NCBI GenBank assembly: GCA_937625935.1
Contig: OW569388.1
Coordinates: 62,001 to 126,000 of the forward strand
DNA: 64,000 bases
Direction of reading: 5' to 3'
Origin: Tetramitus jugosus
Lineage: Eukaryota > Protista > Heterolobosea
Shown in pieces: positions 17,230 to 38,028 of this stretch. The notes beneath the pieces are model-generated. The model saw only the letters and a list, made by a program, of their open reading frames with translations, had not been told where the DNA came from and ran no database searches. Made by a program: the position numbers and the translations under genes. Each line of letters starts with the position of its first letter. Position 1 is the stretch's first letter.

Positions 17230-17594
17230 TGCAGAGATAACCAGTGAGTTGAAGAGACAGAATACTCGATTAACAGAAGAACTTCAAAGCATGGGAGATG
17301 CCCATCTAAAATTGAAGAAGGATCACGATGCTCTGAAGAAGGAGAACATGCAACTGCGTTCCGAGAATTCTCACATTCAAAAGAGACTTACAGATGCAGA
17401 GAGAGAGAACGATCGCTCCAAGAACCAGATATCACTACTCGAAAAAGAAATGGAGAAAATGGAAAGCGAAGCACTCCTCATTCTCAGCAACAAAGAGGAT
17501 GCAAAATCAAGAAGGAAGGAACACACTATTGCTTCCACCTATTGCGCAAGTAACAAGATTAAGGTTGACCTTTCCAATCAAGGTGATATCTATG
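17225..17594 (+). CDS. Coiled-coil segment, probably a further exon of the 15658 gene; boundaries uncertain
   Basis: Frame is open from 17225 with strong heptads (LKRQNTRLTEELQ...LKKENMQLRSEN). A probable GTATGT donor lies near 17595. Confidence 0.5.
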
Positions 17595-19333: not shown

Positions 19334-22300
19334 ATGATGATGATGATTGCACACAAACACAGTGGTGTCTACACAATGTTTAAACTCTTACTGCTCTTGT
19401 TGTGCCTCTCCTTGTTCAACGATGGACATAAGAAGGGAATTTCAATGGTGGTGAACGCCCAATGGTCAAAGCCAGTGTTCTTAAACACCTTGAGCTTCAC
19501 TGCATCAAGTAGTCAAGTACTGACGATTTCAGGAGGATCTAGCATCTACGACACACGTTATCAATACACAACTGAGATGTGGATCAAGCCATCAAGTGCT
19601 TCTCTCTCCAGTAGTGTCATACTATCCTTGAAGGATGGGACGAGTGTATTGAGCCTTTCATCAAGCAAAGTAGTCTGTTCCGATCCATACAACCCAACAG
19701 CATGGAAGGTCACATCAAGTGTAACTATATCTGCAAACACATGGACACACATCGCTTGTACAAGATCGTTCACAAATGTGTTGACTCTGTATGTCAATGG
19801 TATCAGCGTTGGATCCTATTCATCTCTTACCGAAAGAGTCAATGCTGGGGTGGATATCGTTATTGGTTGCTTGGCATCAGGAAGTACCTATTCCAATTGC
19901 TATGCAGGTGAGATTGATGAAATTCGATTCTTTTCAAAAGTTAGAACACAGAGTGAAATTAGTTCAAGGAAGGATAGTACCATTCCAGACACTGAGAGTG
20001 GTCTAATTTGCTACTTAAAACTGGATGAACCTACTGGACAAACACTTGTTGATTCCCAGACCCTAACGTCAAGTATACCAGGATACTTGGGCAGGACCTT
20101 GTCTGTAGAGTCATATGATCCAGTAAGGACTAACAAGAATCCTATTCTTCAGAGCACAATGAGTAGCTATGTCTGGTCTGTGCCAGATGATGGATCACCA
20201 ATTTCTTTCTTTTTACAAATTCCAGAGCTATCACCAGTCAGATTCTCTGATCCAGATGGAGATACATTGTACTATTCATGTATCCAATCAGATGGAACAG
20301 CTCTTCCTGGTTTTCTTGATTATTCGGATGGCGGCTCTTCTCAAACCCTCATGGGTATGGCAACAAATCTCGATGCAGGAACATACAATTTGACCATTCA
20401 ATGTTCTGACAAGATAGGGGTAACATTGGGATGGTTTCAGTTGACGGTAAATAGGGTACCCAGAGTAGTTGTACCGATACCAGATCAAACAGCTTACGTC
20501 GGAAGCATTTTCTCATTCATCGTTCCTGCGGGAACATTTGTAGACAGTGATTTGGGACAAGTTCTAACATTCCAAGCATACGAGACGAGTAAGAGTGTTC
20601 TTCCCTCGTGGCTCTCGTTCAATCCATCAACTCGAACCTTTTCTGGAGCACCAAAGAGCGACGATGGTGGGGAGTGGTCGATTGATGTGAGAGCGACAGA
20701 CAACTACTCTGCTTGGATTTCAAATACATTCACCCTGAAGGTGGTCTGTCCTAATTACTATACTCGATGTGCATTTTATTGGACTCACGATTTTGTTTCA
20801 TCAAATAATCAAGTAGATATAATTACCAATGGATTGAATTTACTCTCTGGTCGTACTGAATGGAGTATTGAAGTTTGGATCCATGCACGAAGGTTCTCTA
20901 GTAGTATCATTGGAAAGGATTCAGTAGGTTCTCCAATTCTTGCTCTAGATAGTAGCGGGAAGCTGGTATTTACAACGGCTTCGGGATTCGGTTTTACTTC
21001 TTCTGCTTCCTTGTCACTCAACACTTGGTGCCATGTTGCATTTAGCAAATCTTCTTCATCATGGGCATTTTATATAGATGGAGTTCAGTCAGGAGCGGGA
21101 TCAAGCTCTGTATCATTTGGGAACATTTCTGGAAACTTATTACTCGGAGCAACGGGAACGTCTCCTTACTCCTCATTCTTCGACGGTCTTCTCGATGATA
21201 TTAGAATATGGAGCGTTGGAAGAACATCTACCGATATTTCGACCAATAGGTTACTAGAGTTGAAAGGAAGTGAACTCAATTTGATTTCATATTGGAAGCT
21301 AAATGATGGAGTAGGGGTTCAATCCATAGCCAATAGCAAATCAGGAGGTCCTATCGGGTATCGAGGCCGAACTACAAGTTCAGAATCATCAGATCCCAAC
21401 ACTAGAAAGTACAACTACCTCCCAACCACTACCACTCTTTTCACAGACGATTCTGTAACTATTACCATTGGTACTTACTCTCGAACTTACAATACTTTCG
21501 TAGACAAGGATTTTGATGATTTCGTCATCACATTGATCCAACAAAGTGGAGCATCTGCTCCTGGGTGGTTAAGTTTAAATAGCGGAGCTCGAACGATAAC
21601 AGGAACACCCGGAGCAAGTGACTATGGTGTGGTTTATCAAAGATTACGAGCAAATGATGGTACAGAGAATGCAGATATAGACTGGAAGACAACTGTGAAT
21701 AGAAAACCAACAGTAACCAGTATCGGGAATATGGTAGTGAACGTAGATCAACAGTGGTCATTCACTATTCCTATAACTACGTTTGTAGATCCCGATAATG
21801 ATGTATTAACATACTCAACATCTTCCCTTCCCGGCTACTTATCATTCGATGCTGCATCCAGAACATTTAGTTGCACTCCTACAAGTAGTTATGTGGGTAC
21901 TTCGACAATCACCGTCACCGTCACGGATGGATACCTTTCATCTTCAGTGTCGACTTCATTCCAGTTAACTGTGAACATGGTTCCAGTGTTCAATTCAATT
22001 GCAAATCAAGTTTGTACCACTGGAATTTCAAAGAGCTTTACTCTACCTTCTTCGTCATTCACAAATCCAGATACAACTGGGACTCTTTCGTTCAGTGCTA
22101 CTATGCAGGATCTATCATCTCTACCATCATGGATTACTTTCAATCCAAGTACAAGGATATTTAATTTCAATGCAGCAACAACAAATTATGGAAATTATGT
22201 AATTCGAGTGAATTGTACAGATGGATATGGTTGGGTGTATGGAGATTTCACATTGGTTGTCAACAGACCTCCCTTATTGACCAATCCAGTGTCTGATGTT

Positions 22301-25300
22301 ATTGTTTCAAATGGAGACTTGTTGAATCTGATCGTACCAGATGGCCAATTTACTGATCCAGATGGACAAACTTTAACAAGAACGGCCAAATTATCTAGTG
22401 GAGCTGCTCTACCTTCTTGGTTGTCATTCATTGGCACAACTTCCAAGAGGTTCTCGGGAACTCCTTCAGAGACCGATGCAGGAACGATAATAGTCAGAAT
22501 TACTTGTAATGATGGTTACACAACTGTGTATGATGACTTCACGGTCAAGGTCAATAGAAAACCGGTTGTATCTGTCCCGATCACTGGTCAATATGTGAAT
22601 CTAGGTTCTTCCTACTCATATAGGTTTCCAGATGGGACTTTTACAGATGCAGACGGAGATAGTTTAACTTACACGGTGACGAAGGTCGATGGCTCGATGT
22701 TACCCTCGTGGCTTTCCTATTCTTCAAAAACCTTTTCTGGAACTCCCTCCACCACTGATTATGGAACGATACCGATTCGCATTGCATGTAGCGATGGCAT
22801 GTCGACCGTGACTCATGACTTTAACTTGAGGGTAAATCGGATCCCTATTGTTCAAAGAACCATTCCCAACGATCACGCAAACACCTTCTACTCATATTCT
22901 TATCTGGTGCCCTCGAACATCTTTTCAGATCCTGACGGTGATACTCTCGTTCTATCAGCCACTCAATCTCCGAATACTCCCCTCCCGAGTTGGTTATCTT
23001 TTAATACGACAACGAGAGAGCTATCAGGACTACCAGTTCCTGAAGACGCAGGTTTGAAAACGATTAGGATTACAGCAACCGATGGAATGGGTTCAATTTT
23101 TACAGAGTTTGTCATCGATGTAAATAGATCCCCAATGTATGTGAACACTATTCCAAGTCAATGGATTATTTGGGGAGACAGTTGGCATTTTGACATGGCC
23201 TCAAACACATTCTTAGACCCTGACGGAGATAAGATGACCTACAGAGCCACCCTCTCTGATGGTAATACTCTGCCTGGTTGGATATCATTTAATCCAATTA
23301 CGTTGGTATTCAGTGGTCCAAACCCACCTGGACCTGGAAACACTTTTATCAAGGTTACTGCTGATGATTCGAAGTCCACAGGAACAGCTGTGTTTCGACT
23401 CGCAGTTGACAGGTATCCGAAAGTGAATATGACGATTCCAAATCAAATCGTTTCTATTGACCGAAGTCCCCTAAACTACAAGATTCCATCAGATACATTT
23501 TACAGTTTGGATTTACATACATTGTATTTGTCTGCAGCAATATCTCCCTCAACAGGTTTGCCATCATGGTTATCATTTGACACGGTCAACAATGTTGTTT
23601 CTGGCTCACCACCATGGAGTGCAGCTGGAACAATTACTCTTCGAGTTACGGCCACTGATACTTTCTTGAGCAATTTTACCGAATTTGACATCCTCATCAA
23701 CAGACCTCCAATTGTAAAGAGCCCAATTTCGTCAAAAGTTATCACGATTGGTAATAGCATATCTATTGGGGTTTTGACTTCTGATCTCTTTGATGATCAA
23801 GACCTCGATAGCCTATTCACTTCGATAAAGCTCAACACGGGAGCTTCCCTTCCTTCGTGGTTGACATACAGCAGCGATCCAATCGGATTATTATCGGGAT
23901 CTCCAGGAATAGGTGACTATGGCACAATGATTGTTCGGATAACTACCTCAGACAAGAAAACAACAACAAATCTGGACTTTTCGCTGCTTGTTAACAGAAG
24001 ACCTCGCTTGACAGTTCCTATTCCACTTCAGAGGCCAACGATATCTCTTCCTTACACCTACACATTCCCCATGAATACGTTTGTTGATGATGATGGCGAT
24101 GAGTTGAGTTTCTTTGTTTCAGCACTACCTGCTTGGCTGAGTTTTAACGCCATGACCAGAACTTTCTCAGGGACGCCACAGTCTTCAGACTTACAAAATT
24201 TCACTGTGCTACTCTCTGCCCTAGATTTGGATTCTAATGTCACTACATCTGTCGGTTTTCGTGTTAACCGAATGCCTGTTGAACAAAAGTCAATCTCCTC
24301 TATGTTCGTCACTATTCCCAATTTTTACTCGTTCTTGGTACCAGAGAGCACTTTCCTTGATAAGGATGGAGACCTTCTCACTATAACTGCAACTGTTTCA
24401 TCTGGGTCCAACCTCCCTGATTGGTTAGTGTTCAACGGGACTCACTTTTTTGGAACGGCATCACTGGATTCAAATGCTGGAATCTTGACCATTCGACTCA
24501 CTGCTAGTGATGGAGTTTCCACGGGAGTATCCGATTTTACATTGGTTGTGAACAGGAGACCGCGTCTTGTTACATATGTTGCTAATACATATATGAACTC
24601 AGGAGCTTTGTTTTCATATCAAGTATCAGCCAGTACATTTGTAGATGATGACGAAAACGAACTCAAGTATGGCTCAAGGTTAGCTAATGGTTCTTCTCTA
24701 CCTTCCTGGTTATCGTTTGATCCAACAACCTTGATTTATCGTGCTAGCCCCATAGATAGCTATGCCGGTTTGTACAACATATCCCTCACTGCCAACGATT
24801 CGATGTCCACAACAACCACATATTTTTTAGTGAGGGTAAATAGATATCCCGTTGTAGAGAAGATGATTCCACAGCAAGTGGTGACAGTAGAAGTGGATCC
24901 ACTCTCGTTTATAATTCCACTTGAGACATTTTCAGATCCTGATGGAGATGGATTGTTTATATCTGCATTAACCAAACCTTCAACCCCATTACCAGCATGG
25001 TTATCATTCAACAGTTCGACAAACACATTCTCAGGTTCTCCGACAATGGTTTTTGCTGGAATAGTAACAATAAGGGTCACGTGTACAGATTCAATGGCGA
25101 GCGTCTTCACAGATTTCAATATATTGGTTAACCGACGCCCTTCCACAGACAAATCCGTACCGAATACTGTTGTAACAGTAGATCATGAATTCTTGTATTC
25201 AGTTCCGAACAACACATTTAGCGACGCTGATTCAAATATTTTGACATATAGCTCTACCCTGACAAATGGGTCCTCGTTACCCCCTTGGCTCTCTTTTTCC

Positions 25301-27829
25301 CCCGCCAATATGAGTTACTTTGGAGCACCTAAATATTCTGATGCGGGTAGATTGATGGTAAAATTGATTGCCAATGATAGTCACTCGATTAGCTATACTT
25401 CATTTGAGATATACATCAACAGAAGACCGATTGTTCTAAACTCTATTGCAAATGCTTTTGTCACCATCGGATATTCTCTCTTGTATGCAGTCTCATCGAA
25501 CACATTTTGGTCGCCGGATGGAAACTCTCTGACCTACTCTACAACTCTCTCTAATGGATCTTCCATACCAAATTGGATTGGATTTACAGAAAGTACAGTT
25601 ACCTACAGTGGTGTTCCTATCTTGGCTAATGTAGCTAATCATACTGTTCGGTTGATAGCGTTTGATGGCTATTCGAGTAACTATTGTGATTTCAATCTGA
25701 CAGTGAACCGAGCTCCTCAAGTTTCTAATTCTATTCAAAATCAAATTGTGAATGCAGCAGAATTTATGAATTTTCAAATTCCATTCAATACATTCTGGGA
25801 TCCTGATGGAAATATTCTCAGTTTGACAGCTACTTTGAGTCCTTCCGGGACTTTGCCTTCATGGATGAATTTCCTTCCTTCCAATAACACCTTGAATGGA
25901 ACTCCAAGTACTTCTAACTTTGGTTCGATTTTACTGAAGATAACAGCCTCAGATAGTATGGCAAGCGTTGCCACGTATGTGAGTATCTTGGTGAACAGAA
26001 AGCCCACCCAAAACTATCCAATTTATAATCAGGTTGTGACGATTGGCTATACATTCTCCTTGCTTATTCCTTCGGGAATGTACTCAGACGAAGATGGAGA
26101 TTCCATTGTTGTCACAGCTGCTCAGAAAGATGGTTCGGTGCTGCCTTCTTGGTTGAAATTTTATCAAAGCAATCTATTTTTTACTGGCACTCCTTCCCAA
26201 AACGATTATGGCATAATACTAGTAAGATTAAGTGCTTCTGATGGAAAGGGTACAACTCACACTGACTTCCAACTCTATGTTAACCGAGCACCTGATGTGT
26301 ACAAACCTATCCCGACCCAAACTGTAACAATAGGCAGTGTCTTCCTGTACAGAATGGACAACAAAACATTTAATGATGCTGACTCGGATGAGTTGACTTA
26401 TTCGGCGACAACCAACTCAGGTGCACCTCTTCCCTCGTGGCTTTTTTTTGACAAAGCAACAGTCACTTTCCACGGTACCCCCGAAGCAACAGATTACGGA
26501 GAGCTAGTAGTTCGAGTTATTGCTCATGATGGTTTCTCTACAGCTCAAGCCACATTTTCTCTCTATGTGAACCGCAGGCCTGTCGTATCAAATCCACTTA
26601 CTGATTCTTATGCAAACATTGGTTCCCCCTACTTCTTTTCTATACCATCAAACACATTTAGTGATGAGGATAACCAGCAACTCATGTTAAGTGCAAAGCA
26701 AGCAGACGGAAGTCTTTTACCTCCCTGGCTGTCTTTTAATCCTGCTTCTAATTCATTACTAGGATTCCCCTCAGCCTCGAATGCGGGTGTGCTATCTCTT
26801 CAAATCCTATGTACTGACGGGTTGGCTGCTGTGTCAACCACACTTTTCATCCGAGTTAACAGAGTTCCTACCATCATGAATTCTATCCCGGCTCAATGGG
26901 TCAATGTGGGACAACCTCTTCACTTTGAACTACCATCTCTGACTTTTGCAGATGCAGATAATGACACTCTCTTCTATTCTGCAACCTTGAGTGACGGATC
27001 ATTACTTCCTTCATGGATGACCTTTTCGAGTGATCACTTTTATGGAGCACCATCTCAGTCAGATGCTCGTCTATTGACAATTCGCGTTACTGCATCTGAT
27101 TCCATGGCAACTGTTTCTCTGGATTTTATTCTGTTGGTGAATAGGCGACCTGTTGTCGCGAAGCCTATCGGTTTGCAATATGTTTCAGTGGGGGATACAT
27201 GGCATTTTGTCATTCCCAATGATACGGTCATAGATCCGGAGGGTCATAGTATTTCTTATTCTGCAGATGTAGTTGGCGATCTAGTTTTACCGGAATGGAT
27301 TATTTTTGATGCGGTGACAAGAACTTTTGTTGGTCGTCCCTCTGAAGGAAGCTTCGGTACCATAAGCATACGGTTAGGAGCAAGTGATTCAATGGATGTG
27401 GAATACACATCCTTCCTTCTTCTGGTCAATAGGAAACCAGTTGTGCAAAATCCGATTCAAGACAAAATTATCGTTGCAGGGAATGTGTTTCTGTTCACAG
27501 TCCCTGACAACACTTTTCTCGAGATGGACAAGGATCAAACTCTCTCATATTCTTCAAAGCTAGCCAATGGCTCTGCATTACCCCTATGGTTGTCCTTTGA
27601 TGCCGTATCCAAATCATTCTCAGGGACTCCCAGTGTAAGTGATGGAGGCTTATGGGAAGTTCGAGTGGTAGCTGAAGATAATTATAGCAACCAATCGTGC
27701 AAGTTTAACCTATTTGTCCACAGGAAACCAGTTGTTGTTCATGAAATTGCAACAAAGAACGCCATTACAGATCAACTCTTCCAGTATCAATTCCCATCAG
27801 ACACATTCAATGACCCAGATTGTCCCTAA
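19334..27829 (+). CDS. Giant secreted protein (chain A): signal peptide, LamG, 2 CADG/He_PIG domains, LamG, 22 CADG domains, then the N-terminal part of one more CADG ending DPDCP
   Basis: Signal FKLLLLLLCLSL...VVNA. Two concanavalin/LamG domains (TTEMWIKP, WTHIA, GEIDEIRF; SIEVWI, WCHVA, GLLDDIRIW). 24 repeats of about 97 aa with NRxP...F-x-D-x-D...LPSWLSF...SGTP. No TM or GPI-like tail. Confidence 0.88.
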   Translation: MMMMIAHKHSGVYTMFKLLLLLLCLSLFNDGHKKGISMVVNAQWSKPVFLNTLSFTASSSQVLTISGGSSIYDTRYQYTTEMWIKPSSASLSSSVILSLKDGTSVLSLSSSKVVCSDPYNPTAWKVTSSVTISANTWTHIACTRSFTNVLTLYVNGISVGSYSSLTERVNAGVDIVIGCLASGSTYSNCYAGEIDEIRFFSKVRTQSEISSRKDSTIPDTESGLICYLKLDEPTGQTLVDSQTLTSSIPGYLGRTLSVESYDPVRTNKNPILQSTMSSYVWSVPDDGSPISFFLQIPELSPVRFSDPDGDTLYYSCIQSDGTALPGFLDYSDGGSSQTLMGMATNLDAGTYNLTIQCSDKIGVTLGWFQLTVNRVPRVVVPIPDQTAYVGSIFSFIVPAGTFVDSDLGQVLTFQAYETSKSVLPSWLSFNPSTRTFSGAPKSDDGGEWSIDVRATDNYSAWISNTFTLKVVCPNYYTRCAFYWTHDFVSSNNQVDIITNGLNLLSGRTEWSIEVWIHARRFSSSIIGKDSVGSPILALDSSGKLVFTTASGFGFTSSASLSLNTWCHVAFSKSSSSWAFYIDGVQSGAGSSSVSFGNISGNLLLGATGTSPYSSFFDGLLDDIRIWSVGRTSTDISTNRLLELKGSELNLISYWKLNDGVGVQSIANSKSGGPIGYRGRTTSSESSDPNTRKYNYLPTTTTLFTDDSVTITIGTYSRTYNTFVDKDFDDFVITLIQQSGASAPGWLSLNSGARTITGTPGASDYGVVYQRLRANDGTENADIDWKTTVNRKPTVTSIGNMVVNVDQQWSFTIPITTFVDPDNDVLTYSTSSLPGYLSFDAASRTFSCTPTSSYVGTSTITVTVTDGYLSSSVSTSFQLTVNMVPVFNSIANQVCTTGISKSFTLPSSSFTNPDTTGTLSFSATMQDLSSLPSWITFNPSTRIFNFNAATTNYGNYVIRVNCTDGYGWVYGDFTLVVNRPPLLTNPVSDVIVSNGDLLNLIVPDGQFTDPDGQTLTRTAKLSSGAALPSWLSFIGTTSKRFSGTPSETDAGTIIVRITCNDGYTTVYDDFTVKVNRKPVVSVPITGQYVNLGSSYSYRFPDGTFTDADGDSLTYTVTKVDGSMLPSWLSYSSKTFSGTPSTTDYGTIPIRIACSDGMSTVTHDFNLRVNRIPIVQRTIPNDHANTFYSYSYLVPSNIFSDPDGDTLVLSATQSPNTPLPSWLSFNTTTRELSGLPVPEDAGLKTIRITATDGMGSIFTEFVIDVNRSPMYVNTIPSQWIIWGDSWHFDMASNTFLDPDGDKMTYRATLSDGNTLPGWISFNPITLVFSGPNPPGPGNTFIKVTADDSKSTGTAVFRLAVDRYPKVNMTIPNQIVSIDRSPLNYKIPSDTFYSLDLHTLYLSAAISPSTGLPSWLSFDTVNNVVSGSPPWSAAGTITLRVTATDTFLSNFTEFDILINRPPIVKSPISSKVITIGNSISIGVLTSDLFDDQDLDSLFTSIKLNTGASLPSWLTYSSDPIGLLSGSPGIGDYGTMIVRITTSDKKTTTNLDFSLLVNRRPRLTVPIPLQRPTISLPYTYTFPMNTFVDDDGDELSFFVSALPAWLSFNAMTRTFSGTPQSSDLQNFTVLLSALDLDSNVTTSVGFRVNRMPVEQKSISSMFVTIPNFYSFLVPESTFLDKDGDLLTITATVSSGSNLPDWLVFNGTHFFGTASLDSNAGILTIRLTASDGVSTGVSDFTLVVNRRPRLVTYVANTYMNSGALFSYQVSASTFVDDDENELKYGSRLANGSSLPSWLSFDPTTLIYRASPIDSYAGLYNISLTANDSMSTTTTYFLVRVNRYPVVEKMIPQQVVTVEVDPLSFIIPLETFSDPDGDGLFISALTKPSTPLPAWLSFNSSTNTFSGSPTMVFAGIVTIRVTCTDSMASVFTDFNILVNRRPSTDKSVPNTVVTVDHEFLYSVPNNTFSDADSNILTYSSTLTNGSSLPPWLSFSPANMSYFGAPKYSDAGRLMVKLIANDSHSISYTSFEIYINRRPIVLNSIANAFVTIGYSLLYAVSSNTFWSPDGNSLTYSTTLSNGSSIPNWIGFTESTVTYSGVPILANVANHTVRLIAFDGYSSNYCDFNLTVNRAPQVSNSIQNQIVNAAEFMNFQIPFNTFWDPDGNILSLTATLSPSGTLPSWMNFLPSNNTLNGTPSTSNFGSILLKITASDSMASVATYVSILVNRKPTQNYPIYNQVVTIGYTFSLLIPSGMYSDEDGDSIVVTAAQKDGSVLPSWLKFYQSNLFFTGTPSQNDYGIILVRLSASDGKGTTHTDFQLYVNRAPDVYKPIPTQTVTIGSVFLYRMDNKTFNDADSDELTYSATTNSGAPLPSWLFFDKATVTFHGTPEATDYGELVVRVIAHDGFSTAQATFSLYVNRRPVVSNPLTDSYANIGSPYFFSIPSNTFSDEDNQQLMLSAKQADGSLLPPWLSFNPASNSLLGFPSASNAGVLSLQILCTDGLAAVSTTLFIRVNRVPTIMNSIPAQWVNVGQPLHFELPSLTFADADNDTLFYSATLSDGSLLPSWMTFSSDHFYGAPSQSDARLLTIRVTASDSMATVSLDFILLVNRRPVVAKPIGLQYVSVGDTWHFVIPNDTVIDPEGHSISYSADVVGDLVLPEWIIFDAVTRTFVGRPSEGSFGTISIRLGASDSMDVEYTSFLLLVNRKPVVQNPIQDKIIVAGNVFLFTVPDNTFLEMDKDQTLSYSSKLANGSALPLWLSFDAVSKSFSGTPSVSDGGLWEVRVVAEDNYSNQSCKFNLFVHRKPVVVHEIATKNAITDQLFQYQFPSDTFNDPDCP

Positions 27830-28095
27830 CTTTCATTCAAAGAACGATTAAACAACTCTCTTTGGTTACTGAGGATTTGGTTGACTATTTGCTTTTTGTA
27901 TCACCATTGTCGTTTTCCACTGCCCTCAGTCAACAGACCATTTGGTCTCTTGGGGTAAAAGGGATCATAAAATGTGCGGACGAAGCGCATTTCTCCTTTT
28001 GGAGAACTCCAACAAAACATTTACAGTATGATATCGGGTCATTTGAAGAGCTCTTCGTAGTCATGCACACAGTACAAGAGCACCAACAAACAATA

Positions 28096-31000
28096 ATGGG
28101 AAGGTCATTCATTCATATCAATGAGAACTCTCACAAGCTTCCTATTCAATTATCTATCATAAAGATATCATTGATATGGCTTCTTGTAACAACAATTGTC
28201 CATTTCACAAATCTTGGCGCTCAGGTGGTAGCAGATAATAGCACTGTTCCATTAGATGCTTGCTTTCCATTAATCTACAGCGCAAGTCTAGCAGATGGAA
28301 GACACTTGCCAGCTTGGTTGTCTTTCTCTTCGAGTGATCGAACTTTCTCGGGTGTGCCTTCTTCGAGCGACATAGGGCAACTCATGGTGAGAATTACTGC
28401 ACAGGATACTCATGGTGCATCTTCGATTACCGATTTTTTTTTAAACGTAGCTGCTCCTGGACAGTCGAATGAAATTACAGACAAGGTTGTCACCATTCCT
28501 TCAACTATCGAATTGACCATCTATGCCCAGTCGTTCCCTGACTTGGACAATCAGACGGTGGTGATGAATTCTTCTTTGGCGGACAGCAGCCCGCTTCCTC
28601 CATGGTTATCATTCTTTCCTACCAACAATACCTTTCTGGGAGCTCCCTCAGTTTCAGATGCAGGGGAGTACTTGGTCAGAGTCAGAGCTCAGGATCAGAA
28701 CAATGGCGTCCAGTTGGCTGATTTTAAGATTCTAGTTAATCGCCGACCAGTGGTGCTGACACCGTTAGGAAATCACATGGTAACTGCGAATCAGCGATTC
28801 CAATACACAATTCAAGTTCCAACGTTCTTCCAAGATCCAGATGATAATTCATTGATGTTATATGTTTCAAGGACAGATGGCACACCATTACCTAGTTGGC
28901 TTTCTTTTTCATCCAATACATTTTCGGGCACCCCTCTTCTAAGTGATAGTGGATACTTGCAAATAGTTGTTCGGGCATCGGATGGGTACGTATCAGTCGA
29001 GAGCATTTTCTCCATATTTGTGAATCAACCACCCTACATCATGAACAGAATTCCAGATAGGTTGATTAATGCAGGTACTACGGTTCAATTTGTGATACCA
29101 TCAAACTCTTTCTCTGATAATGATAGCCCGAGTCTCGAGCTCCATACTCAAATGAACAATGGAGATGTTCTTCCGAACTGGTTGACATTCTTTGGAAATA
29201 ATCAAACCTTTGTTGCCCAACCTCCCAACAATATTCACGGCCCTTTTCTGGTGGAGGTATCAGCAATAGATTCGTTTGGGGCATCAACATCAAGCTCATT
29301 TGTTTTAACTGTGAATAGACCTCCAGTGCTCAACATGTCAATTCCGGTTCTCTCGGTAACTATTGGAGGGGTTGTGACGTACAAAATACCATCTAACACA
29401 TTCTATGATCCAGATGGAAGTTCACTAACAATATCCATTGTTCAACAAGATGGAAGTCCTCTTCCATCATGGTTAACATTTAATCCTATTTCGAACTCCT
29501 TTTTTGGATTTCCTGATACACTGGATGCTGGTGAATGGCATTTAAATGTGAGTGCCACTGATGGGGCAGCATATGTGTCCACTGATTTGAGTTTGATTGT
29601 CAATAGGAAGCCTCAGATTAACAATTTGATTCCTCCTCAGCACGTGACAATCGGATCTACATTTGTATATCAAATTGATGATTCAATATTTGTGGACCCT
29701 GATAACAACACATTAACTCTGACGGCTTCAAAAGCAAATTTATCCCCACTACCATTGTGGCTTTTGTTTTTCAATTCCAACAACACCTTTTTTGGTGTTC
29801 CTGGAGTGAGTGATTATGGTGCAGTCATGATTCGGGTCACGGCATCTGATAACTTCTCGTCAATTTATGTAGACTTTCAACTTCGTGTCAATAGAGCTCC
29901 TTTACTTGTGAACCCAGTCGCAGATCAAGTAGTCAATGTCCAGCATTCGCTTCTGTATACTGTCCCTTTCAATACTTTTTTCGATTCGGATAATGATGTG
30001 CTATTTTATTCAGCCAGTTTGACAAATGGATCAAATCTTCCTTCTTGGCTTCAATTCAATCCTAGCACTCGCAGGTTTACTGGTTTTCCATTGACTGAAG
30101 ATGTTGGGAATTACAACCTGTTACTTACTGCTGATGATGGAATGTCTCAAGTAACATCATCATTTAACATTCAGGTTAACCAAGGACCAGTCGTCATAAA
30201 TTATCCAGGAGCTCAGATTGTAGTTGTGGGAACAAGAAAAGAGTTTAATGTACATGATGTTTTTCTTTCATTGGATGGCTATTCATTGGATCTAACGGCT
30301 GGATTAAACACGGGAGATATTTTACCGATCTGGATTAGCTTTGATAGTTCCAAATCAAAGTTTATATTCACACCGACTGTAGTGTCAAATCCAATAGTAA
30401 TCAAGTTGAGGGCTGCTGATCCATACTCTAGCTTGAGTGTGCTATTTTCTGTGATCAGTCAATGTCCGATAGGGTACAGAGGAGAAGCTTGCCAAACCTT
30501 CGATTGTTATTCTATCTTATCCACCAATTCAACAGTGTGTAGTTCTCGTGGTAATTGCACTGCTCCAGATACTTGTACTTGTTCAACGGGATATGCTGGA
30601 AGCAACTGTGATCGGACGGGATGTTTTGGAGTGCCATGGAATGTTCGTGGTGTTTGTTCTGGTCATGGAACATGCACAGGACCCAATCAATGTGTATGCA
30701 AAAACGGATGGTTAAATTATGATTGTTCTCTCACAAAGTGCAATGGAGTTCTGAACACAAATTCATCTGTTTGTTCTGGTGTTGGTGCTTGCATTGCTCC
30801 GAATTATTGTGACTGTCCTTTGGGTTACTCAGGCTCTAAATGTCAAGATTACTCGTGTTTTGAAGTTAGTACTCATCTTTCTTATGTGTGCGCAGGCAAT
30901 GGTCAATGTGATTCCCCTGATGTATGTGTTTGTAAACCAGGGTATTATGGACTTGATTGTTCATTTTTTGATTGCTTTGGCGTATCTCAAGACAACTCAA

Positions 31001-34000
31001 GTGTGTGTAATGGGCGAGGGGCCTGTGTCGCGCCAGACATCTGTTCATGTTCTACCGGATATTCTCACCCCGATTGCTCTGATTACTCATGCTTCGATAT
31101 ACAGTATTCCATGAATAGTGTTTGCAGTGCCCATGGAGTTTGCACTTCGTTCAACAATTGCACATGTCATGCTCAGTATTATGGATTGGACTGTTCTGAT
31201 TACAAGTGTTATGACAACTTGGCCTCTGATATATCTCGAGTCTGTTCTGGTCATGGAGTGTGTGTCTCTCATGACAATTGTACCTGTTCGGATAGATACA
31301 ATGGTAATGACTGCTCTGAGTACGAATGTTATGGGGTCAGGGCAAAAAATGCCACTGTTTGCAGTGGTCATGGAGTGTGCAGTGGAATCGATCGGTGTAC
31401 TTGTGATCCAGATTACATATTCACTCTTGATTGTAGTAGGACTAGGTGTTTTGGGAAGTTTGACAATGACAGTGCGGTATGTAATGGAAGAGGCAGTTGT
31501 ACAGGGATCAACACCTGTTCCTGTATATCGGGATATGCAGGGTCTAATTGCGAGTTGCATGCTTGTTCGGGAATCGAATTCACCAGTTCTCATGTGTGCA
31601 GTGGGCACGGAAAGTGTTTGGGTCCCAATAACTGTTCCTGTTATCCTGGATACCAAGGCACAGATTGCTCAGTGTATTCATGCTTTGGTGTACAGTCAAC
31701 TGAACCTTCAGTTTGCAGTTCTAAAGGGGTTTGCATAGCCAACAATCTTTGTGCTTGCCTACCGGGATATGAAATAATGGAAAATTGCTCTAGAACAAAG
31801 TGCTTTGAAATATTGGATAATAGTTCATCAGTCTGCAGTGGTCAGGGAGATTGCATCGGATACAACAATTGTATTTGTGATTCTGGTTACTTGGGTGACA
31901 ATTGCTATACACACAAATGTCACAACGTTTTCAAAGATGATAAAGCAGTGTGTAGCGGTCATGGTTCATGTGTTTCTCCTGATCATTGTTTCTGTAGTCT
32001 TGGCTACTCAGGATACAACTGTTCTAAATACACTTGCTATGGTGTTGACTATAACAATGAATCGGTTTGTAGTAGTAATGGTGTTTGTGTATCTCCCGAT
32101 AACTGCCAGTGTTATCCAGGGAGACTGTTCTCGGACTGCTCGAGAACCACTTGTTTTGGACAACTTGACAACGAGACATCCGTGTGTTCTTCAAATGGAC
32201 GATGTACTTCGAAAGACCATTGCAACTGTAATTCAGGATTTGGAGGAGAACAATGTGCTTCTATTGCATGTTTTGGAGTCGTACTTACTGATCCATCTGT
32301 TTGCAGCGAACATGGTCAATGTACCGGACCAAACACTTGCAACTGTGACACTGGTTACTCTGGGATTGATTGCAGTAACTTTACCTGCTACAATTGGGAT
32401 AGATATGATGCTAATGTATGTAGGGGTCATGGTCGATGCTCCAATCTCAATAATTGCACTTGTAGATCTGGGTATCAATACGATTTTGATTGCCATCGAA
32501 CCAAATGCTATTCCATTTTCTCTAATGAGTCTCAAGTATGTTCAGGAAATGGATCATGTGTTGGACCAGATGAATGTGCATGTTATCCAGGATATGGAGG
32601 AGCTCAATGTGATCAACATACATGTCATGGAGTAGTGCATTCGAATCCGGGTGTGTGTTCCAGCCATGGCAGTTGTGTGGGTATTGACAAGTGTACATGT
32701 CAATCAGGCTACAGTGGATCCAATTGTTCAACATATGATTGTTTCGGACTAGATTCAACAGATGTTTCTGCTTGCTCCGGTCGTGGTCGTTGTGTATCTT
32801 CTCACAATTGTCAATGTCCTGTAGGATATCAGATTGAAAAAGATTGCCGCAGAACGACTTGTTTTGGAGCCCTGGACAATAGCTCTTCAGTTTGTTCTGG
32901 ACGAGGTCGTTGTATAGCACTAAACACTTGTCTATGTGACTCTGGATATTCAGGTGCGGCCTGTCAGGATACCGTTTGTTTCAATCGATCTTCGTCGGAT
33001 CCCAAGGCATGTGGCGGTCATGGTGTATGTGTTGCACCCAATGATTGTTCTTGTGAGGCAAATTATTTGGGAAATGATTGTTCGGATTATCAGTGCTTTG
33101 GAGTGCATCGTACGAGTTCGTCGGTATGCTCAGGTCATGGTGTGTGTACTGCAATCAACAAGTGCAAATGTGAACCTGGATATACATTGATAACATGTTC
33201 TCAACCTGTTTGCTATTCAATGTTGAGCACTAATCCATATGTTTGTTCCTCTCATGGCGTATGCAAGGGACCAGATACCTGTGTGTGTGATACTGGATAC
33301 TACAATGCTACCTGTCATTCTTACTCCTGTTTTGGTGTTTCAAGTTTGGACTCAATCAATGTTTGTAATGGACATGGTGATTGTCTTGCTCCAGATGTAT
33401 GCCATTGTGAATCTGGGTACTATGGATCAGATTGTCAAGTGACAAGTTGTTATGGGGTGAGCTCGAATTCCTCCAGCGTGTGTTCTGATCATGGTTCTTG
33501 TGTTTCGACAGACAATTGTCTCTGTGATGACGGATTCTATGGTAGTACATGTGAGTTATGGTCTTGTTTCTCAAAGGAATTATCTGATTTGAATGTTTGT
33601 AGTGGAATTGGAACTTGTGTAAAACCAAACACTTGCGCTTGTGACACTGGTTTTGGAGGAAATGAATGTCAATTCCCATTGTGCTACGGATACACGCGGA
33701 ATGAAACTCAAGTGTGCAACGGCAATGGGTACTGCGAATCTCCCAACTTTTGCGAATGTTCCAAAGATGCACTTGGTGTGGAGTGTGAAGTGAAAGTTTC
33801 AGATTTTGTAATGTCACCCGATGGAAATAAGATGACTGCTACTTTCAACTCAAAATTCAACAATGGCTATGAATTTGAGTGGGGAAGCAGAGATAATTGC
33901 AATTATATCCTCTCTAATGTATCGTTGTTGGGACATGATACTACATGCTCTATCCAAAATGAAACTTTGATCCTTGTCCTCGGGATATTCAGTTCTATTC

Positions 34001-37000
34001 AGTTGTATGACGTGCTCGAGGTCAGAATCTATCCTAAACTGCCACCAAACTCCTCGTTCCAATATCCAGCTCACATTTCCAAGAGCTTGCAAGACAAATT
34101 GATCACTCAAATCCAAGTTCAACCAAACAAAAGTCCAATTATTCCAACAGTCGTTCTATCTGTAGAATCTACGAACGTGTATGATTGTGCACCAGTGGAT
34201 CTTAGTGTACATGTGGAAATTTACTCGTTGAAAAGAACGAACATAGTTCTCTCGTCCAGACATTTTGATTCAGAGACCATGAATCACATGAATTACTATT
34301 TATCTCGAGTGTCTCTCAGTCCCGCGACCACTTCAGTTCACATTCCTTCATCCAGTTTCCTTATAAGCACCAAGAATAGGACAGCAGAATTCCATTTCAC
34401 ACTCTCAGTGAGATCCAATCTGGGTTATGAGTCAGAGTCTTCGATCACCATCCAATACACTCACTTACCTCTCCCAGTGTACAAGACGAAGAGAAACTTG
34501 ATTCTATCAAGGAGAAGCGACGATTATATGGTTGAGACAACACCTGCCCTCGCAACGACATGTGGGAATCCGAACCATTATCCAACCATATCTGAGTGGC
34601 TGCAGTTAAGCGGTGAGCCTATTGTCGGATTCAATTCAAAGGAAGATCGATTCAATTCCTCTTCTTTCCTATTACCTCCATTCTTCTTCCCCAAGGTAGA
34701 TGAATCATACCAATTAACGTTAAGGAGTGCTCTGAGAGATTTTCCATTTGTGAAATCCCAACTTGACATTTTTGTGAGAGTTGTATCACAAGAGTTGAAG
34801 GCTCTGATTGGGGGTGCTGATCGAGCAGAACCCATCTCGAGTGATGTTATTCTCAAGGCCATAGTGTCAGATCCGGATCTGTTAGATGATGCTCCAGATC
34901 ATTTTGAGTGGAGATGCTATGACACAAGAATGCTCTGTCCTGAAGATAGGCATGGTCTTACTCTTGTCATTCCTGCATTCAGTATGCTAGTTGGATACAA
35001 ATCATTCGACTTTAGATACATCAAGGGCAATAGAGAAACCACGGCATCCATTCAAATCAATGTTGTTGCGGCAGATTTTCCTATTGCTCGCATAGAAGGA
35101 GTTCCTTTGAATAATCGAATGAACAACTATGAAGGTTTGCAACTTCTTGCAGTTGTCGAGAATTATCCTTCGAGCAACGTGTACTTTCAATGGGAGGTGT
35201 ACCGCGGAGGATTATTGCTCAACAATAGCACCATGACTACTCCTTCCACCACTTTAGCATCACTGTCCATACGTCCAAACGTGATGACACCTTCAGCAAG
35301 GTACGGTTTCCGATTGACAGTATTCTTAAAACCCGACCTCGCACATCTGTCGTATTATGGTACTCCTGGAGTGGCCGAAGCAGAAATTCAAATCAATACT
35401 CAACCAAAAGACGGTCCATTTACTGTTACTCCTTCTGAGGGATATGCACTCTCAACAGTTTTCAAGCTCGATTGTATGGGTTGGCAGTCTGACACTCAAC
35501 CTTACTTCTTCTCTTTTTCATTTCTCGATGAAATCAATTACTCGTACAACAAGTCAAGAATGCTCTCAATGACTCCTACCCTGAGAGAACAATTGGATGT
35601 TATGTTACCTCAGCCGACCACTCGCGCAGATCATCGGCTATTCATTAAGGTTCGAGTGAGCGATCTCTATGGAGCAACCACAGAGCGAATCATTTCAGTG
35701 ATTGTAAAACCCCATCCAACGATAACGTACAACACTGCATTGAATTCGATTCTGGGTAATTTAACTTTGATAGAAAATGAGAAGCAAGAGGAGCAAGTGT
35801 TTGGTCGTGACTTGGCAGTCTTAACATTTGCTCTCAATCAAGTTGTATCAATCAATCAGTTGAACAGTAGTAACAACTGTACCAATGATTGTTATCAAAG
35901 TCTAGGGCAAGGTACATGCAATAATATAACAACAACATGCACATGCCATCAGGGATATCATGGGGACGACTGTTCATTGACCCCAGATGATGTCGAGAAC
36001 AGAAAGAATGTTCGATTGACCCTCCTTCAACAATATTCCAAATACTCGGAAGTACCCACAATGTCAACAGATCATTTGAATTTTAGATTGCAGACATTGT
36101 CATCCATCACTTCTAAAGTGAGTGAACTATCGATGGACATGGCCATCCTGGGTTCCAACTTTTTAAACAGTACATTGAGCATGAACACTGCCCCAATGAG
36201 TGAGACCCTGGTTAAAGAGACTGCCAATGTGATTAACAACTTGTTTTCAGTGTCTCTTTCTTCTATCGATTCTAGAGTATCTCCAATCGATTCCTATCAA
36301 TTAAGCGTCAAACAATTGACTTCAATCATGTCACTCAAAGAAACAACTGATGTTCTTCTGTCAAATGCTTTGGCCAATAAGGTACAGGGACAGGCAGAAA
36401 CTAAGTTGATCACCTCTAATCTGAAGGCTTGTATTTTCAAGGATTATGCAAGCTTACTAGATGGGAAAACAATATCTATTGTAAATGATGGTTCTTCCCC
36501 AATGTCTCCACCACAGACCCAACAAATCCTAACAATACCCAAGGGATTTGGAACAGAGATGATTTCAAAATTCAATTCCTCCACAGGTGAAAAAGAACCA
36601 ACAATTGGTCTTAGAATCGTGTCTCTGATTGTCAACCCACACGACACTCGATCCCATGCCAGATCCAGAAAAGATCGCATTTCCAGTGATTTATTGAGCA
36701 TTGTGTTTGAGGTGAACGGTGTAGCCACATCAATGACCAATCTAACCAATATGATTGAATTTATAGTACCCGGAACATACTCGTACAATGATGATCCATC
36801 CCTCCCATCTTCTTCTCGCACTGCACCTCTCTGCAAGTACTGGGATCATAGTAAGGGTGTTTGGAGTACCGAGGGAGTGGTCACTCTGAAATTCTCTCCA
36901 ACAAGTACATCATGCCTCACAAGTCACACGACAGATTTTGCAGTGTTTGTGGGGCAGTACATTCCACCGCCCCCACCTTCACCCAGCTCTCAAATACACT

Positions 37001-38028
37001 TGCCCAGTGACTTTGAACCATCGACTCTCGACCGACAAGCATGGAATGTGTTCCCATGGTGGTGGATCTTGGTTGCAGCACTTGTGTCTGGGTGCTTTGT
37101 CTTGGGATTAATGAGTGTGTTAGTGCTCGTAGTTGGCATCATGTCTCGGAAGAGATCTCACATTGAAGATGACTCGTATGAAGATGATGAAGAAGGTATG
37201 ACCTATGAAGACATGGAAGGGGATGAAGAAATCATGAGGAATCATCAACGACCACACAGTAACTGCAGTATGGAGAGTGCTCATGATGATGACATGTCGA
37301 GCGAAACACGAAGTCATTATCTGCACTTTATGTACTCGAGAGCCGACAGTAGGGCATCGGATCTATCGTTGATGGCAGCGCCATATTCAGAGCAGGTGGC
37401 TGATGGCAGAGAAAAGAGATATCAAATGACAGCGAAGAACAAGAATGAATCATCAGCCTTCTTTAACAAGAGTATGATGATGCATGAAGTAGAGTTTGAT
37501 TCCACTGTGATGAATCGAAGAAGGTCTGATGATGACGATGACGAGAATCATGACGAGAATCAGGATGGTGATGATGATGGAGCAACTCATTGGAAACACC
37601 ATGTAAACAATAACGACAACTCCCATGAGAGTTCAACTGAGAACCTCTTTGTCCGAATGGATAGCTTTACTAACTCTTTATACAACAACAATGACAGGTA
37701 CGGCAACCATCGTCTTGGGCAACTAAAGAAGAACCAAGTAGCTCCTCACATGGACGATGATGCAGACTCCACACTGATGGACGACGGTACAGACCTTTCA
37801 GGCCCCACACCACTTGTTATGGACAAGAGATATTCCACGAACAATAATTCAATCAAGGATGATGATTTAATGACCGAGGAGGAAGAGGAAAGTTCATCTC
37901 TCCGCCAACCGAACAAGGAAAGTCACCATGAAGCCCTTCAAATCCCCAGTTCACAGCAATTCCGAAACTTTGTTGTTCGTTATGTGGATGAAGAAGACGA
38001 GGACTCATTGCAGGAGGATGAGAAATAA
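28096..38028 (+). CDS. Giant type-I membrane protein (chain B): putative signal peptide, C-terminal part of a CADG, 7 CADG, 28 EGF-like repeats, PKD/REJ-like region, EGF, GAIN/GPS, single TM, acidic cytoplasmic tail; start inferred (alternative ATG 28063)
   Basis: LPxWLxF repeats to about 30460 and 39-aa VCSGHGxC repeats at 30463-33786. REJ-like motifs (LIGGADR, DPD..FEWRC, INTQPKDG.FTVTPSEGYALST.F). GPS CKYWD...W...CLTSHTTDFA at 36832-36951 and TM at 37057-37143. Confidence 0.85.
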   Translation: MGRSFIHINENSHKLPIQLSIIKISLIWLLVTTIVHFTNLGAQVVADNSTVPLDACFPLIYSASLADGRHLPAWLSFSSSDRTFSGVPSSSDIGQLMVRITAQDTHGASSITDFFLNVAAPGQSNEITDKVVTIPSTIELTIYAQSFPDLDNQTVVMNSSLADSSPLPPWLSFFPTNNTFLGAPSVSDAGEYLVRVRAQDQNNGVQLADFKILVNRRPVVLTPLGNHMVTANQRFQYTIQVPTFFQDPDDNSLMLYVSRTDGTPLPSWLSFSSNTFSGTPLLSDSGYLQIVVRASDGYVSVESIFSIFVNQPPYIMNRIPDRLINAGTTVQFVIPSNSFSDNDSPSLELHTQMNNGDVLPNWLTFFGNNQTFVAQPPNNIHGPFLVEVSAIDSFGASTSSSFVLTVNRPPVLNMSIPVLSVTIGGVVTYKIPSNTFYDPDGSSLTISIVQQDGSPLPSWLTFNPISNSFFGFPDTLDAGEWHLNVSATDGAAYVSTDLSLIVNRKPQINNLIPPQHVTIGSTFVYQIDDSIFVDPDNNTLTLTASKANLSPLPLWLLFFNSNNTFFGVPGVSDYGAVMIRVTASDNFSSIYVDFQLRVNRAPLLVNPVADQVVNVQHSLLYTVPFNTFFDSDNDVLFYSASLTNGSNLPSWLQFNPSTRRFTGFPLTEDVGNYNLLLTADDGMSQVTSSFNIQVNQGPVVINYPGAQIVVVGTRKEFNVHDVFLSLDGYSLDLTAGLNTGDILPIWISFDSSKSKFIFTPTVVSNPIVIKLRAADPYSSLSVLFSVISQCPIGYRGEACQTFDCYSILSTNSTVCSSRGNCTAPDTCTCSTGYAGSNCDRTGCFGVPWNVRGVCSGHGTCTGPNQCVCKNGWLNYDCSLTKCNGVLNTNSSVCSGVGACIAPNYCDCPLGYSGSKCQDYSCFEVSTHLSYVCAGNGQCDSPDVCVCKPGYYGLDCSFFDCFGVSQDNSSVCNGRGACVAPDICSCSTGYSHPDCSDYSCFDIQYSMNSVCSAHGVCTSFNNCTCHAQYYGLDCSDYKCYDNLASDISRVCSGHGVCVSHDNCTCSDRYNGNDCSEYECYGVRAKNATVCSGHGVCSGIDRCTCDPDYIFTLDCSRTRCFGKFDNDSAVCNGRGSCTGINTCSCISGYAGSNCELHACSGIEFTSSHVCSGHGKCLGPNNCSCYPGYQGTDCSVYSCFGVQSTEPSVCSSKGVCIANNLCACLPGYEIMENCSRTKCFEILDNSSSVCSGQGDCIGYNNCICDSGYLGDNCYTHKCHNVFKDDKAVCSGHGSCVSPDHCFCSLGYSGYNCSKYTCYGVDYNNESVCSSNGVCVSPDNCQCYPGRLFSDCSRTTCFGQLDNETSVCSSNGRCTSKDHCNCNSGFGGEQCASIACFGVVLTDPSVCSEHGQCTGPNTCNCDTGYSGIDCSNFTCYNWDRYDANVCRGHGRCSNLNNCTCRSGYQYDFDCHRTKCYSIFSNESQVCSGNGSCVGPDECACYPGYGGAQCDQHTCHGVVHSNPGVCSSHGSCVGIDKCTCQSGYSGSNCSTYDCFGLDSTDVSACSGRGRCVSSHNCQCPVGYQIEKDCRRTTCFGALDNSSSVCSGRGRCIALNTCLCDSGYSGAACQDTVCFNRSSSDPKACGGHGVCVAPNDCSCEANYLGNDCSDYQCFGVHRTSSSVCSGHGVCTAINKCKCEPGYTLITCSQPVCYSMLSTNPYVCSSHGVCKGPDTCVCDTGYYNATCHSYSCFGVSSLDSINVCNGHGDCLAPDVCHCESGYYGSDCQVTSCYGVSSNSSSVCSDHGSCVSTDNCLCDDGFYGSTCELWSCFSKELSDLNVCSGIGTCVKPNTCACDTGFGGNECQFPLCYGYTRNETQVCNGNGYCESPNFCECSKDALGVECEVKVSDFVMSPDGNKMTATFNSKFNNGYEFEWGSRDNCNYILSNVSLLGHDTTCSIQNETLILVLGIFSSIQLYDVLEVRIYPKLPPNSSFQYPAHISKSLQDKLITQIQVQPNKSPIIPTVVLSVESTNVYDCAPVDLSVHVEIYSLKRTNIVLSSRHFDSETMNHMNYYLSRVSLSPATTSVHIPSSSFLISTKNRTAEFHFTLSVRSNLGYESESSITIQYTHLPLPVYKTKRNLILSRRSDDYMVETTPALATTCGNPNHYPTISEWLQLSGEPIVGFNSKEDRFNSSSFLLPPFFFPKVDESYQLTLRSALRDFPFVKSQLDIFVRVVSQELKALIGGADRAEPISSDVILKAIVSDPDLLDDAPDHFEWRCYDTRMLCPEDRHGLTLVIPAFSMLVGYKSFDFRYIKGNRETTASIQINVVAADFPIARIEGVPLNNRMNNYEGLQLLAVVENYPSSNVYFQWEVYRGGLLLNNSTMTTPSTTLASLSIRPNVMTPSARYGFRLTVFLKPDLAHLSYYGTPGVAEAEIQINTQPKDGPFTVTPSEGYALSTVFKLDCMGWQSDTQPYFFSFSFLDEINYSYNKSRMLSMTPTLREQLDVMLPQPTTRADHRLFIKVRVSDLYGATTERIISVIVKPHPTITYNTALNSILGNLTLIENEKQEEQVFGRDLAVLTFALNQVVSINQLNSSNNCTNDCYQSLGQGTCNNITTTCTCHQGYHGDDCSLTPDDVENRKNVRLTLLQQYSKYSEVPTMSTDHLNFRLQTLSSITSKVSELSMDMAILGSNFLNSTLSMNTAPMSETLVKETANVINNLFSVSLSSIDSRVSPIDSYQLSVKQLTSIMSLKETTDVLLSNALANKVQGQAETKLITSNLKACIFKDYASLLDGKTISIVNDGSSPMSPPQTQQILTIPKGFGTEMISKFNSSTGEKEPTIGLRIVSLIVNPHDTRSHARSRKDRISSDLLSIVFEVNGVATSMTNLTNMIEFIVPGTYSYNDDPSLPSSSRTAPLCKYWDHSKGVWSTEGVVTLKFSPTSTSCLTSHTTDFAVFVGQYIPPPPPSPSSQIHLPSDFEPSTLDRQAWNVFPWWWILVAALVSGCFVLGLMSVLVLVVGIMSRKRSHIEDDSYEDDEEGMTYEDMEGDEEIMRNHQRPHSNCSMESAHDDDMSSETRSHYLHFMYSRADSRASDLSLMAAPYSEQVADGREKRYQMTAKNKNESSAFFNKSMMMHEVEFDSTVMNRRRSDDDDDENHDENQDGDDDGATHWKHHVNNNDNSHESSTENLFVRMDSFTNSLYNNNDRYGNHRLGQLKKNQVAPHMDDDADSTLMDDGTDLSGPTPLVMDKRYSTNNNSIKDDDLMTEEEEESSSLRQPNKESHHEALQIPSSQQFRNFVVRYVDEEDEDSLQEDEK
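30463..33786 (+). repeat. Array of 28 tenascin-type EGF-like repeats (about 117 nt / 39 aa), diverged at DNA level
   Basis: Counted 28 (V/A)CxxxGxC cores with C-x-C-x-x-G-Y-x-G-x-x-C spacing. Confidence 0.9.

Follow-up and report, generated by a model that had tools for sequence, protein, structure and literature searches.

A receptor-like gene pair of the amoeba Tetramitus jugosus split inside one cadherin-like repeat, with possible reassembly of its two products

Two neighbouring open reading frames (ORFs) of Tetramitus jugosus, here called A and B, divide a single CADG repeat between them, A stopping 36 residues into the repeat and B resuming it behind a start codon and a signal-like leader of its own. 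They lie on the forward strand of a 64,000-nucleotide (nt) stretch of contig OW569388.1, hereafter the window, to which all positions refer unless another contig is named. The split is genomic and shared among alleles, and, as judged from sequence comparison with a colinear unsplit ortholog, A and B are the products of a derived gene fission in which about 430 bases were inserted within one domain and three loop residues were replaced. That the two chains reassemble through the split domain is a further proposal, whose prospects we place at about even. The strain, CCAP 1588/3C, is a free-living heterolobosean soil amoeba assembled from HiFi reads as one haplotype of two, with 26.3 Mb in 55 scaffolds plus the mitochondrion, the alternate haplotype being listed as GCA_937658345.1 (PMC11106597); our genome-wide scans covered 26,350,207 bases in 56 contigs.

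The broken repeat and its unsplit ortholog

Gene A encodes, in order, a predicted signal peptide, a LamG domain, two CADG/He_PIG repeats, a second LamG domain, 22 CADG repeats and strands A, A′ and B of a 25th repeat, in which it ends F-N-D-P-D-C-P-stop (TGT at 27821-27823, TAA at 27827-27829). Pfam returned 24 He_PIG stretches and two LamG domains for it, and the CADG/He_PIG identity of the repeats holds, with PF05345 above cut-off and a cadherin-like beta-sandwich fold; the hydrophobicity of the sequence revealed no membrane anchor or transmembrane segment at A's end. B's frame is open from 27814 to 38028 and picks up the split repeat at L-I-Y (28270), following D-A-C-F-P (TGC at 28261-28263), and its Pfam domains are seven He_PIG stretches, EGF repeats, REJ and GPS. 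A previous sequence-only reading of this DNA had A (19334-27829) break off inside its 25th repeat as D-P-D-C-P-stop, had B resume that repeat after D-A-C-F-P, and gave B one transmembrane segment and A no anchor; all of this stands, the last point on the hydrophobic segments. The features around the break are as follows.

19334-27829, + strand: gene A, 2,831 amino acids, 47% identical to and colinear with residues 27-2824 of the ortholog P0121
19334-19459, + strand: predicted signal peptide of A, starting at one of the ATGs 19334-19376, with cleavage after V-N-A, from the sequence, its hydropathy and the ortholog
27428-27718, + strand: repeat 24 of A, containing Cys2789 (27698-27700)
27719-27826, + strand: N-terminal part of the split domain, 36 amino acids, strands A, A′ and B plus the D-P-D loop, with Cys2830 (27821-27823) as the penultimate residue
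27830-28095, + strand: 266-nt non-coding spacer that forms the 3′ flank of A and presumably the promoter of B, with a single genome match
27847-27852, + strand: possible poly(A) hexamer, weak, ATTAAA here and AATAAA in contig L044
28096-28233, + strand: start and signal-like leader of B, 46 amino acids, with a 12-residue hydrophobic core and a predicted V-V-A cleavage site
28261-28263, + strand: Cys opening B's half domain, the sole Cys in B's first 790 residues
28270-28449, + strand: C-terminal part of the split domain, 60 amino acids, strands C to G, including the Asp of the F-G loop (28405-28407)

The ortholog, P0121, is a protein of 6,395 amino acids encoded on a 74.6-kb metagenome contig of the Joint Genome Institute (JGI), and is the top match to B's first 1,035 residues. 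It aligns colinearly with A over its residues 27-2824 (47% identity) and with B over residues 2828-6295, and is therefore an unsplit ortholog spanning both ORFs, as gene fission predicts; its junction loop is ordinary (F-S-D-P-D-G-N-A-L-I-Y, without Cys), and at the place of A's signal cleavage it reads S-N-A and then Q-W. Because P0121 is colinear with A plus B and its junction repeat is intact and Cys-free, the split appears to be derived, by an insertion of about 430 bases. The direction is argued by parsimony from this one ortholog: fusion would first have needed two pre-existing half domains, which makes fission the parsimonious course. Two short-query homolog searches and a scan of metagenome loci gave no junction from a sister species, and a homolog search with A's C-terminal region was dominated by bacterial repeats.

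Both halves belong to one domain, as had been proposed. A's tail matches ortholog repeat 2791 best (score 107, next 74), as does B's half (177, next 141), and an AlphaFold2 (AF2) model of ortholog repeats 24-25, with a predicted local distance difference test (pLDDT) score of 98, places the cut in the B-C loop, with A carrying strands A, A′ and B and B carrying C to G, complementary and non-overlapping. Identity to the ortholog is 56% for the A part and 53% for the B part; the corresponding segments of whole repeats average 49 ± 9% and 47 ± 6%. On this alignment the halves have not decayed and are conserved like the neighbouring repeats. Repeat 24, immediately before the split, is A's most diverged (33% identity to the ortholog, the other repeats 41-60%), and its Cys2789 is not in the ortholog. 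A conversion of repeat 24 from A's repeat at residue 373 was considered, and neither best hits nor a tree supported it.

The break was followed in the contigs of four public runs (X1, X3, X6 and X8), compared over 26500-29500. Contigs of groundwater run X3, which is probably DNA, cover 27668-27847 and 27818-28013 with zero differences from the window; soil RNA runs X6 and X8 span A's stop gap-free; and in an independent JGI contig, L044 (protein P0175), A ends at the same residue with the same Cys. Run X1 is a Hi-C-like library, in which one loose end that maps to 18982 starts with GATC; its two alleles, similar in depth and both split, are probably the two haplotypes of the reference culture; since X1 is taken to be that culture, it was not counted as independent evidence. 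The break is present in every run and allele seen and a joined or spliced form in none, with the limit that run contigs drop rare variants, so that a minor spliced form could escape; the split is genomic and shared, and neither an error nor an intron. The earlier reading had offered an assembly indel near 27815-27829 as one check and a splice joining 27822 to 28255 as another: no indel occurs there in X3, X6, X8 or L044, and the contigs of the two RNA runs have no such joint. We found nothing in favour of an assembly or sequencing error, against which stand the identical X3 contigs and the stop shared by X6, X8 and the JGI contig, and we regard its probability as negligible.

Spacer, start of B and selection on both parts

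The 266-nt spacer is of normal intergenic length for the window, and its codon score of -0.11 is intergenic-like (coding mean +0.10, intergenic -0.10); of the window's 18 other gene ends, just 3 have a poly(A)-type hexamer like the one it holds. Alleles differ freely within it. In the second X1 allele, 62 nt net are missing from 27900-27988, and another deletion, of 17 nt, takes away ATG 28063, with an in-frame TAA left standing five codons upstream of 28096; this allele and L044 both have a TAA at 27853 in B's frame; and run X8 has a 109-nt skip in the spacer, the intervening letters of which are not known. Past 28096 there are just two indels, -9 at 28135 and +3 at 28230, both in frame, and the +3 form, found in all four runs, changes V-V-A to V-S-A at the predicted cleavage site, where the -3/-1 rule still holds. 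In total, no frameshifting indel was found in about 2.7 kb of coding sequence, against at least three in the spacer. Because spacer indels break the frame and leader indels only ever keep it, and because ATG 28063 is absent from the second allele, B's start is placed at ATG 28096, where it had been proposed together with the signal-like segment, and the leader appears to be under frame constraint. Its hydrophobic core has a Kyte-Doolittle value of 2.52 (A, 2.62), and the crude signal test that it passes is also passed by 2.7% of random peptides.

Neither DNA nor protein comparison gave a source for the spacer in the genome, the window or the ESM Atlas. A transposon insertion was rejected, the spacer being present in one copy, without terminal (inverted) repeats and with just a 4-nt AGAT repeat at 27817/28254 that is attainable by chance, and so was descent of B's leader from a decayed first half of a repeat (score 0.1, with 141 of 500 shuffles as high). 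Between the X1 alleles, the spacer is far more divergent (8 of 21 bases in one stretch, and several indels) than coding DNA (about 4-5%), an indication that the alleles of T. jugosus are deeply diverged.

A programmed -1 or +2 frameshift at CCC-TAA would yield one chain with a 145-residue insert between the two Cys. It draws on B's frame, which in the reference overlaps A's end and has no stop in the 94 codons leading up to ATG 28096 (chance 0.004), but a TAA at 27853, another before 28081 and frame-breaking indels in other alleles refute it for the second allele and for L044, and the intergenic-like codon use, the lack of a slippery heptamer and the lack of any protein look-alike also oppose it, leaving it highly improbable.

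Alternatively, the 434 nt from 27822 to 28255 could be an intron with an internal poly(A) site, yielding mostly secreted A and a few spliced full-length chains in the manner of secreted and membrane immunoglobulin M (IgM). The GT..AG ends fit the frames, and such an arrangement would explain why indels are free in the spacer, why A is in excess and why B's frame is intact. The donor, however, reads GTCCCT; likely short introns of the window start with GTATGT or GTAAGT, measure 66-82 nt and are mostly 70-78% AT (17595, 43090 and 51982 on the + strand and about 50625 on the - strand). Contigs of the RNA runs moreover pass the donor without a splice at depths of 38.5 and 13.2, and likewise the acceptor at 3.3, which equals the depth of B further downstream, and in-frame-only indels plus a signal-like peptide inside an intron would be coincidence. 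Since contigs drop rare forms, among which a minor spliced product could be missed, and since depth at the level of B may be DNA, the IgM-like arrangement keeps a small probability, and we consider it improbable. Of the two-chain proposal in the sequence-only reading, the separately coded ORFs and B's own start codon hold.

Over A's last 664 codons, comparison with L044 gave 19 silent and 10 replacement changes (ratio of replacement to silent polymorphism per site, pN/pS, 0.16; p 2e-6), by which A is under purifying selection. B's 9.9-kb frame is intact, free of stops and frameshifts. The insertion is older than the polymorphisms of the spacer, so both ORFs have been retained from the split onward, and on these sequence grounds both parts are maintained by selection. 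That B is silent or decaying and A works alone would agree with the low depth of B in the RNA runs, which may be DNA, and with seven replacement against four silent changes among the listed B variants, a biased subset; the uninterrupted 9.9 kb beside an indel-rich spacer and the frame-keeping leader indels speak against it, and we hold it to be very unlikely.

Possible reassembly of the two chains

The history and mechanism that we propose begin with a single-chain receptor of about 6,400 amino acids with a LamG tip, 32 calcium-stiffened CADG repeats, an EGF stalk, REJ-GPS and one transmembrane segment. In the line of T. jugosus, about 430 bases were inserted in the B-C loop of repeat 25, and, as the alleles and the ortholog show, this insert now holds A's stop and 3′ end together with B's start and signal-like peptide. 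Both chains would enter the endoplasmic reticulum (ER), where A's last 36 residues would give strands A, A′ and B to the five-strand half of B, the domain folding upon association; the junction Cys pair, in the same loop column, would bond as a disulfide and so make up for the broken backbone; and the rebuilt receptor would keep the LamG rod on the cell. Surplus A, suggested by the RNA depth, may be secreted free, dimerised or held back. With the disulfide included, we rate reassembly of A and B somewhat below even, and hold with similar reserve the full proposal of a disulfide-locked split cadherin-like domain with a selected Cys pair, a shared calcium site and excess tip released by reduction.

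Reassembly is argued mainly from ER quality control, which should catch a secreted chain that opens with half a sandwich unless the sandwich is completed, and B keeps its five-strand half directly behind its new signal-like leader. AF2 folds strands C-G of B's mature start at high confidence, with a predicted template modelling score (pTM) of 0.64; because the alignment was built from intact repeats, the model is uninformative on the stability of the half domain. The closest solved fold to the ortholog repeat pair is that of the cadherin-like modules of SraP (PDB 4m00), in which one calcium per junction stiffens the rod (PMC4047093). By analogy, both chains would supply ligands to the calcium site that precedes repeat 25, A through its loop Asp residues and B through the Asp of its F-G loop; the SraP modules are single chains, and A differs from them in having His at the linker ligand position.

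The two Cys carry the argument for a covalent link. Both broken ends have a Cys, as had been read from the sequence (TGT 27821, TGC 28261), and both fall at the alignment column of the ortholog's Gly; none occurs in this loop in the intact repeats of A or B or in any of 2,030 intact loops of all fetched homologs. The accompanying claim of DxD loops does not hold strictly for every intact loop, repeat 24 having E-M-D-K-D and the repeat at residue 2029 W-S-P-D-G. Random junction codons would place Cys at both ends with a chance of about 0.007, for windows picked after the data were seen. A's junction Cys recurs in P0175/L044, this cross-allele confirmation covering A's Cys only. The path D-C, S-S, C-F-P-L is about one residue longer than a normal loop, and since loops of such length occur in A (repeats at residues 373, 881 and 2699), a bond between Cys2830 and the Cys of B would be geometrically plausible.

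Several observations weigh against reassembly or against the disulfide. Any single insertion leaves both halves complete, so that completeness by itself proves nothing, and a young split would show no erosion yet; retention of the halves thus falls short of proof, the age of the split being too poorly known. A's tail has two replacement and no silent changes relative to L044, both at variable positions. The conserved linker Asn preceding the split repeat is His in A (H2796), and repeat 24 is unusually diverged. The two Cys share an alignment column and could both have been copied from a single ancestral codon, in which case the chance estimate would no longer apply, and Cys2789 is an alternative possible partner of Cys2830. 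Contig depth, a poor measure of expression, gives A/B ratios of 7.4 (X6) and 9.4 (X8) in the RNA runs and 1.0 in the X3 DNA, and the B-level signal in the RNA runs may itself be DNA. The depths are a hint of a separate and more abundant transcript for A, and with A at seven to nine times B most A may be free; the high-depth X8 contig stops at 27844, although contigs show neither transcript starts, ends nor strand.

A fission into independent proteins is the first of the rival readings, and we consider it possible at clearly less than even probability. A would then be a freely secreted LamG-CADG rod, serving as a matrix, cyst-wall or substrate adhesin, with its tail Cys paired to Cys2789 or to another A; B would be a shorter receptor with a vestigial half domain; and the Cys pair would be junction noise or a duplicated codon. 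The excess of A RNA, the acceleration of repeat 24 with its further Cys, the lost linker Asn and the two replacement changes in the tail count in its favour. Against it, an open-core half sandwich at the start of a secreted chain should be retained in the cell or lost, yet B's half has 53% identity and keeps its core motifs, and there is a Cys at both ends.

Comparable systems and the rest of the locus

The surrogate light chain, formed by VpreB and lambda5, completes an Ig (immunoglobulin)-like domain by strand complementation, VpreB lacking the strand being unfolded until its partner supplies it (PMC12859133). As proposed for A and B, one Ig-like domain is there completed between two separately encoded secretory chains, with ER quality control tied to assembly; the pair differs in that one strand is donated and not three, and in that the disulfide described joins lambda5 to the heavy chain and not VpreB to lambda5, whereas the Cys pair of A and B lies at the cut. 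A and B further have the CADG fold and an unsplit ortholog, and their assembly is a proposal. For the origin, a parallel is cox2, split by insertion into cox2a and cox2b in Campsomeris and also in chlorophycean algae and alveolates, with Cys enrichment reported in the split product (PMC5374615). There too an insertion cut one gene into two complementary genes, which are separately expressed, but the product is an enzyme subunit of mitochondria, divided at the boundary of its membrane and soluble domains, whereas A and B come from a nuclear gene for a secreted receptor that was interrupted within a domain, and B had to acquire a signal peptide. The tether would resemble that of yeast a-agglutinin, whose secreted adhesion subunit Aga2p is disulfide-tied to the separately encoded anchor subunit Aga1p (PMC6081942). 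The likeness lies in the would-be disulfide between A and B, and no domain is shared in the yeast pair. We know of no single-chain ancestor of Aga1p and Aga2p. By analogy, then, the A/B pair would work like VpreB/lambda5, would have arisen like split cox2 and would be tethered like Aga1/Aga2.

The sequence-only reading had instead looked to chaperone-usher pili, in which donor-strand complementation completes an Ig-like fold (PMC6615685). An incomplete Ig-like fold completed by another chain is common to both, but in the pili a single N-terminal strand is donated, non-covalently, under chaperone guidance and in a polymer, whereas A and B would have a single junction and a C-terminal three-strand donor, with neither paralogous subunits nor a second half-domain locus; because A would donate three strands and not one, the comparison fits less well than fission with association-induced folding of the VpreB/lambda5 type. 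In receptors cleaved in SEA or GAIN domains, such as dystroglycan, MUC1, polycystin-1 and the adhesion G-protein-coupled receptors, two chains share one domain that comes from one gene through proteolysis. A and B resemble these in the shared domain, B itself carrying REJ and GPS, and differ in being two genes with two predicted signal peptides. Within an incomplete coverage of the literature, no protist surface protein was found that combines strand complementation, insertional fission and a disulfide tether.

Gene fissions are usually described between domains. The fission of A and B falls within a secreted domain, is common to several wild alleles and has its unsplit ortholog as a built-in control, and it allows the rescue of a broken gene to be tested through a new start, a new signal peptide, complementation and a disulfide for a peptide bond. 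If the halves assemble, the 36 residues of one and about 65 of the other would make a covalent tag-and-catcher pair of natural origin, and the amoeba could regulate or shed the adhesin tip apart from its stalk. Tip swapping, which had also been suggested, is unsupported: the genome holds no other CADG rod, tip or half domain and the locus is single copy, and with no second partner locus and no alternative tip or stalk, swapping has no partner. He_PIG matches on contigs C2, C8 and C17 were examined as alternative tips or stalks and proved to be unrelated tandem-repeat/VWA proteins. These are three paralogous proteins of about 2,420 amino acids (L036-L038; C2:223000-229400, C8:443000-453000 on the - strand and C17:86000-96000 on the - strand), with bacterial-style tandem Ig-like repeats, a VWA-like domain near the end, no membrane anchor and the termini G-A-N or G-A-V.

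Beyond the split repeat, B comprises the following.

28450-30462, + strand: seven intact CADG repeats
30463-33792, + strand: about 28 EGF-like repeats, of which the ortholog has more
34699-35730, + strand: REJ domain (Pfam PF02010, E 8e-36)
36826-36951, + strand: GPS motif with a variant H-T-T site, putative cleavage (Pfam PF01825, E 3e-8)
37060-37143, + strand: single transmembrane segment, from the sequence; an acidic low-complexity tail then runs to 38028

In B and in the ortholog alike, one canonical Cys is missing from the GPS motif, whose cleavage site is H-T-T-D; if it cleaves, the receptor would consist of three chains. A short paralog of B's stalk lies at C46:80440-84160 (L046; 1,239 codons, 28% identical), laid out as a signal peptide, one EGF repeat and then REJ-GPS, and about eight more REJ/GPS genes occur elsewhere in the genome. 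A heterolobosean-like JGI protein, P0244 (L045), carries a single CADG repeat on an EGF-REJ-transmembrane stalk, so that the combination of CADG with EGF-REJ is not limited to the A/B locus. Upstream of A, at 17200-17260, a + strand ORF stops at TGA 17229 and another frame opens at 17225, with no consensus intron evident there; the site may mark an intron, an indel or a second gene. The genes of the window are eukaryotic, NPC1-like, SRP68, BRE1 and XPF among them.

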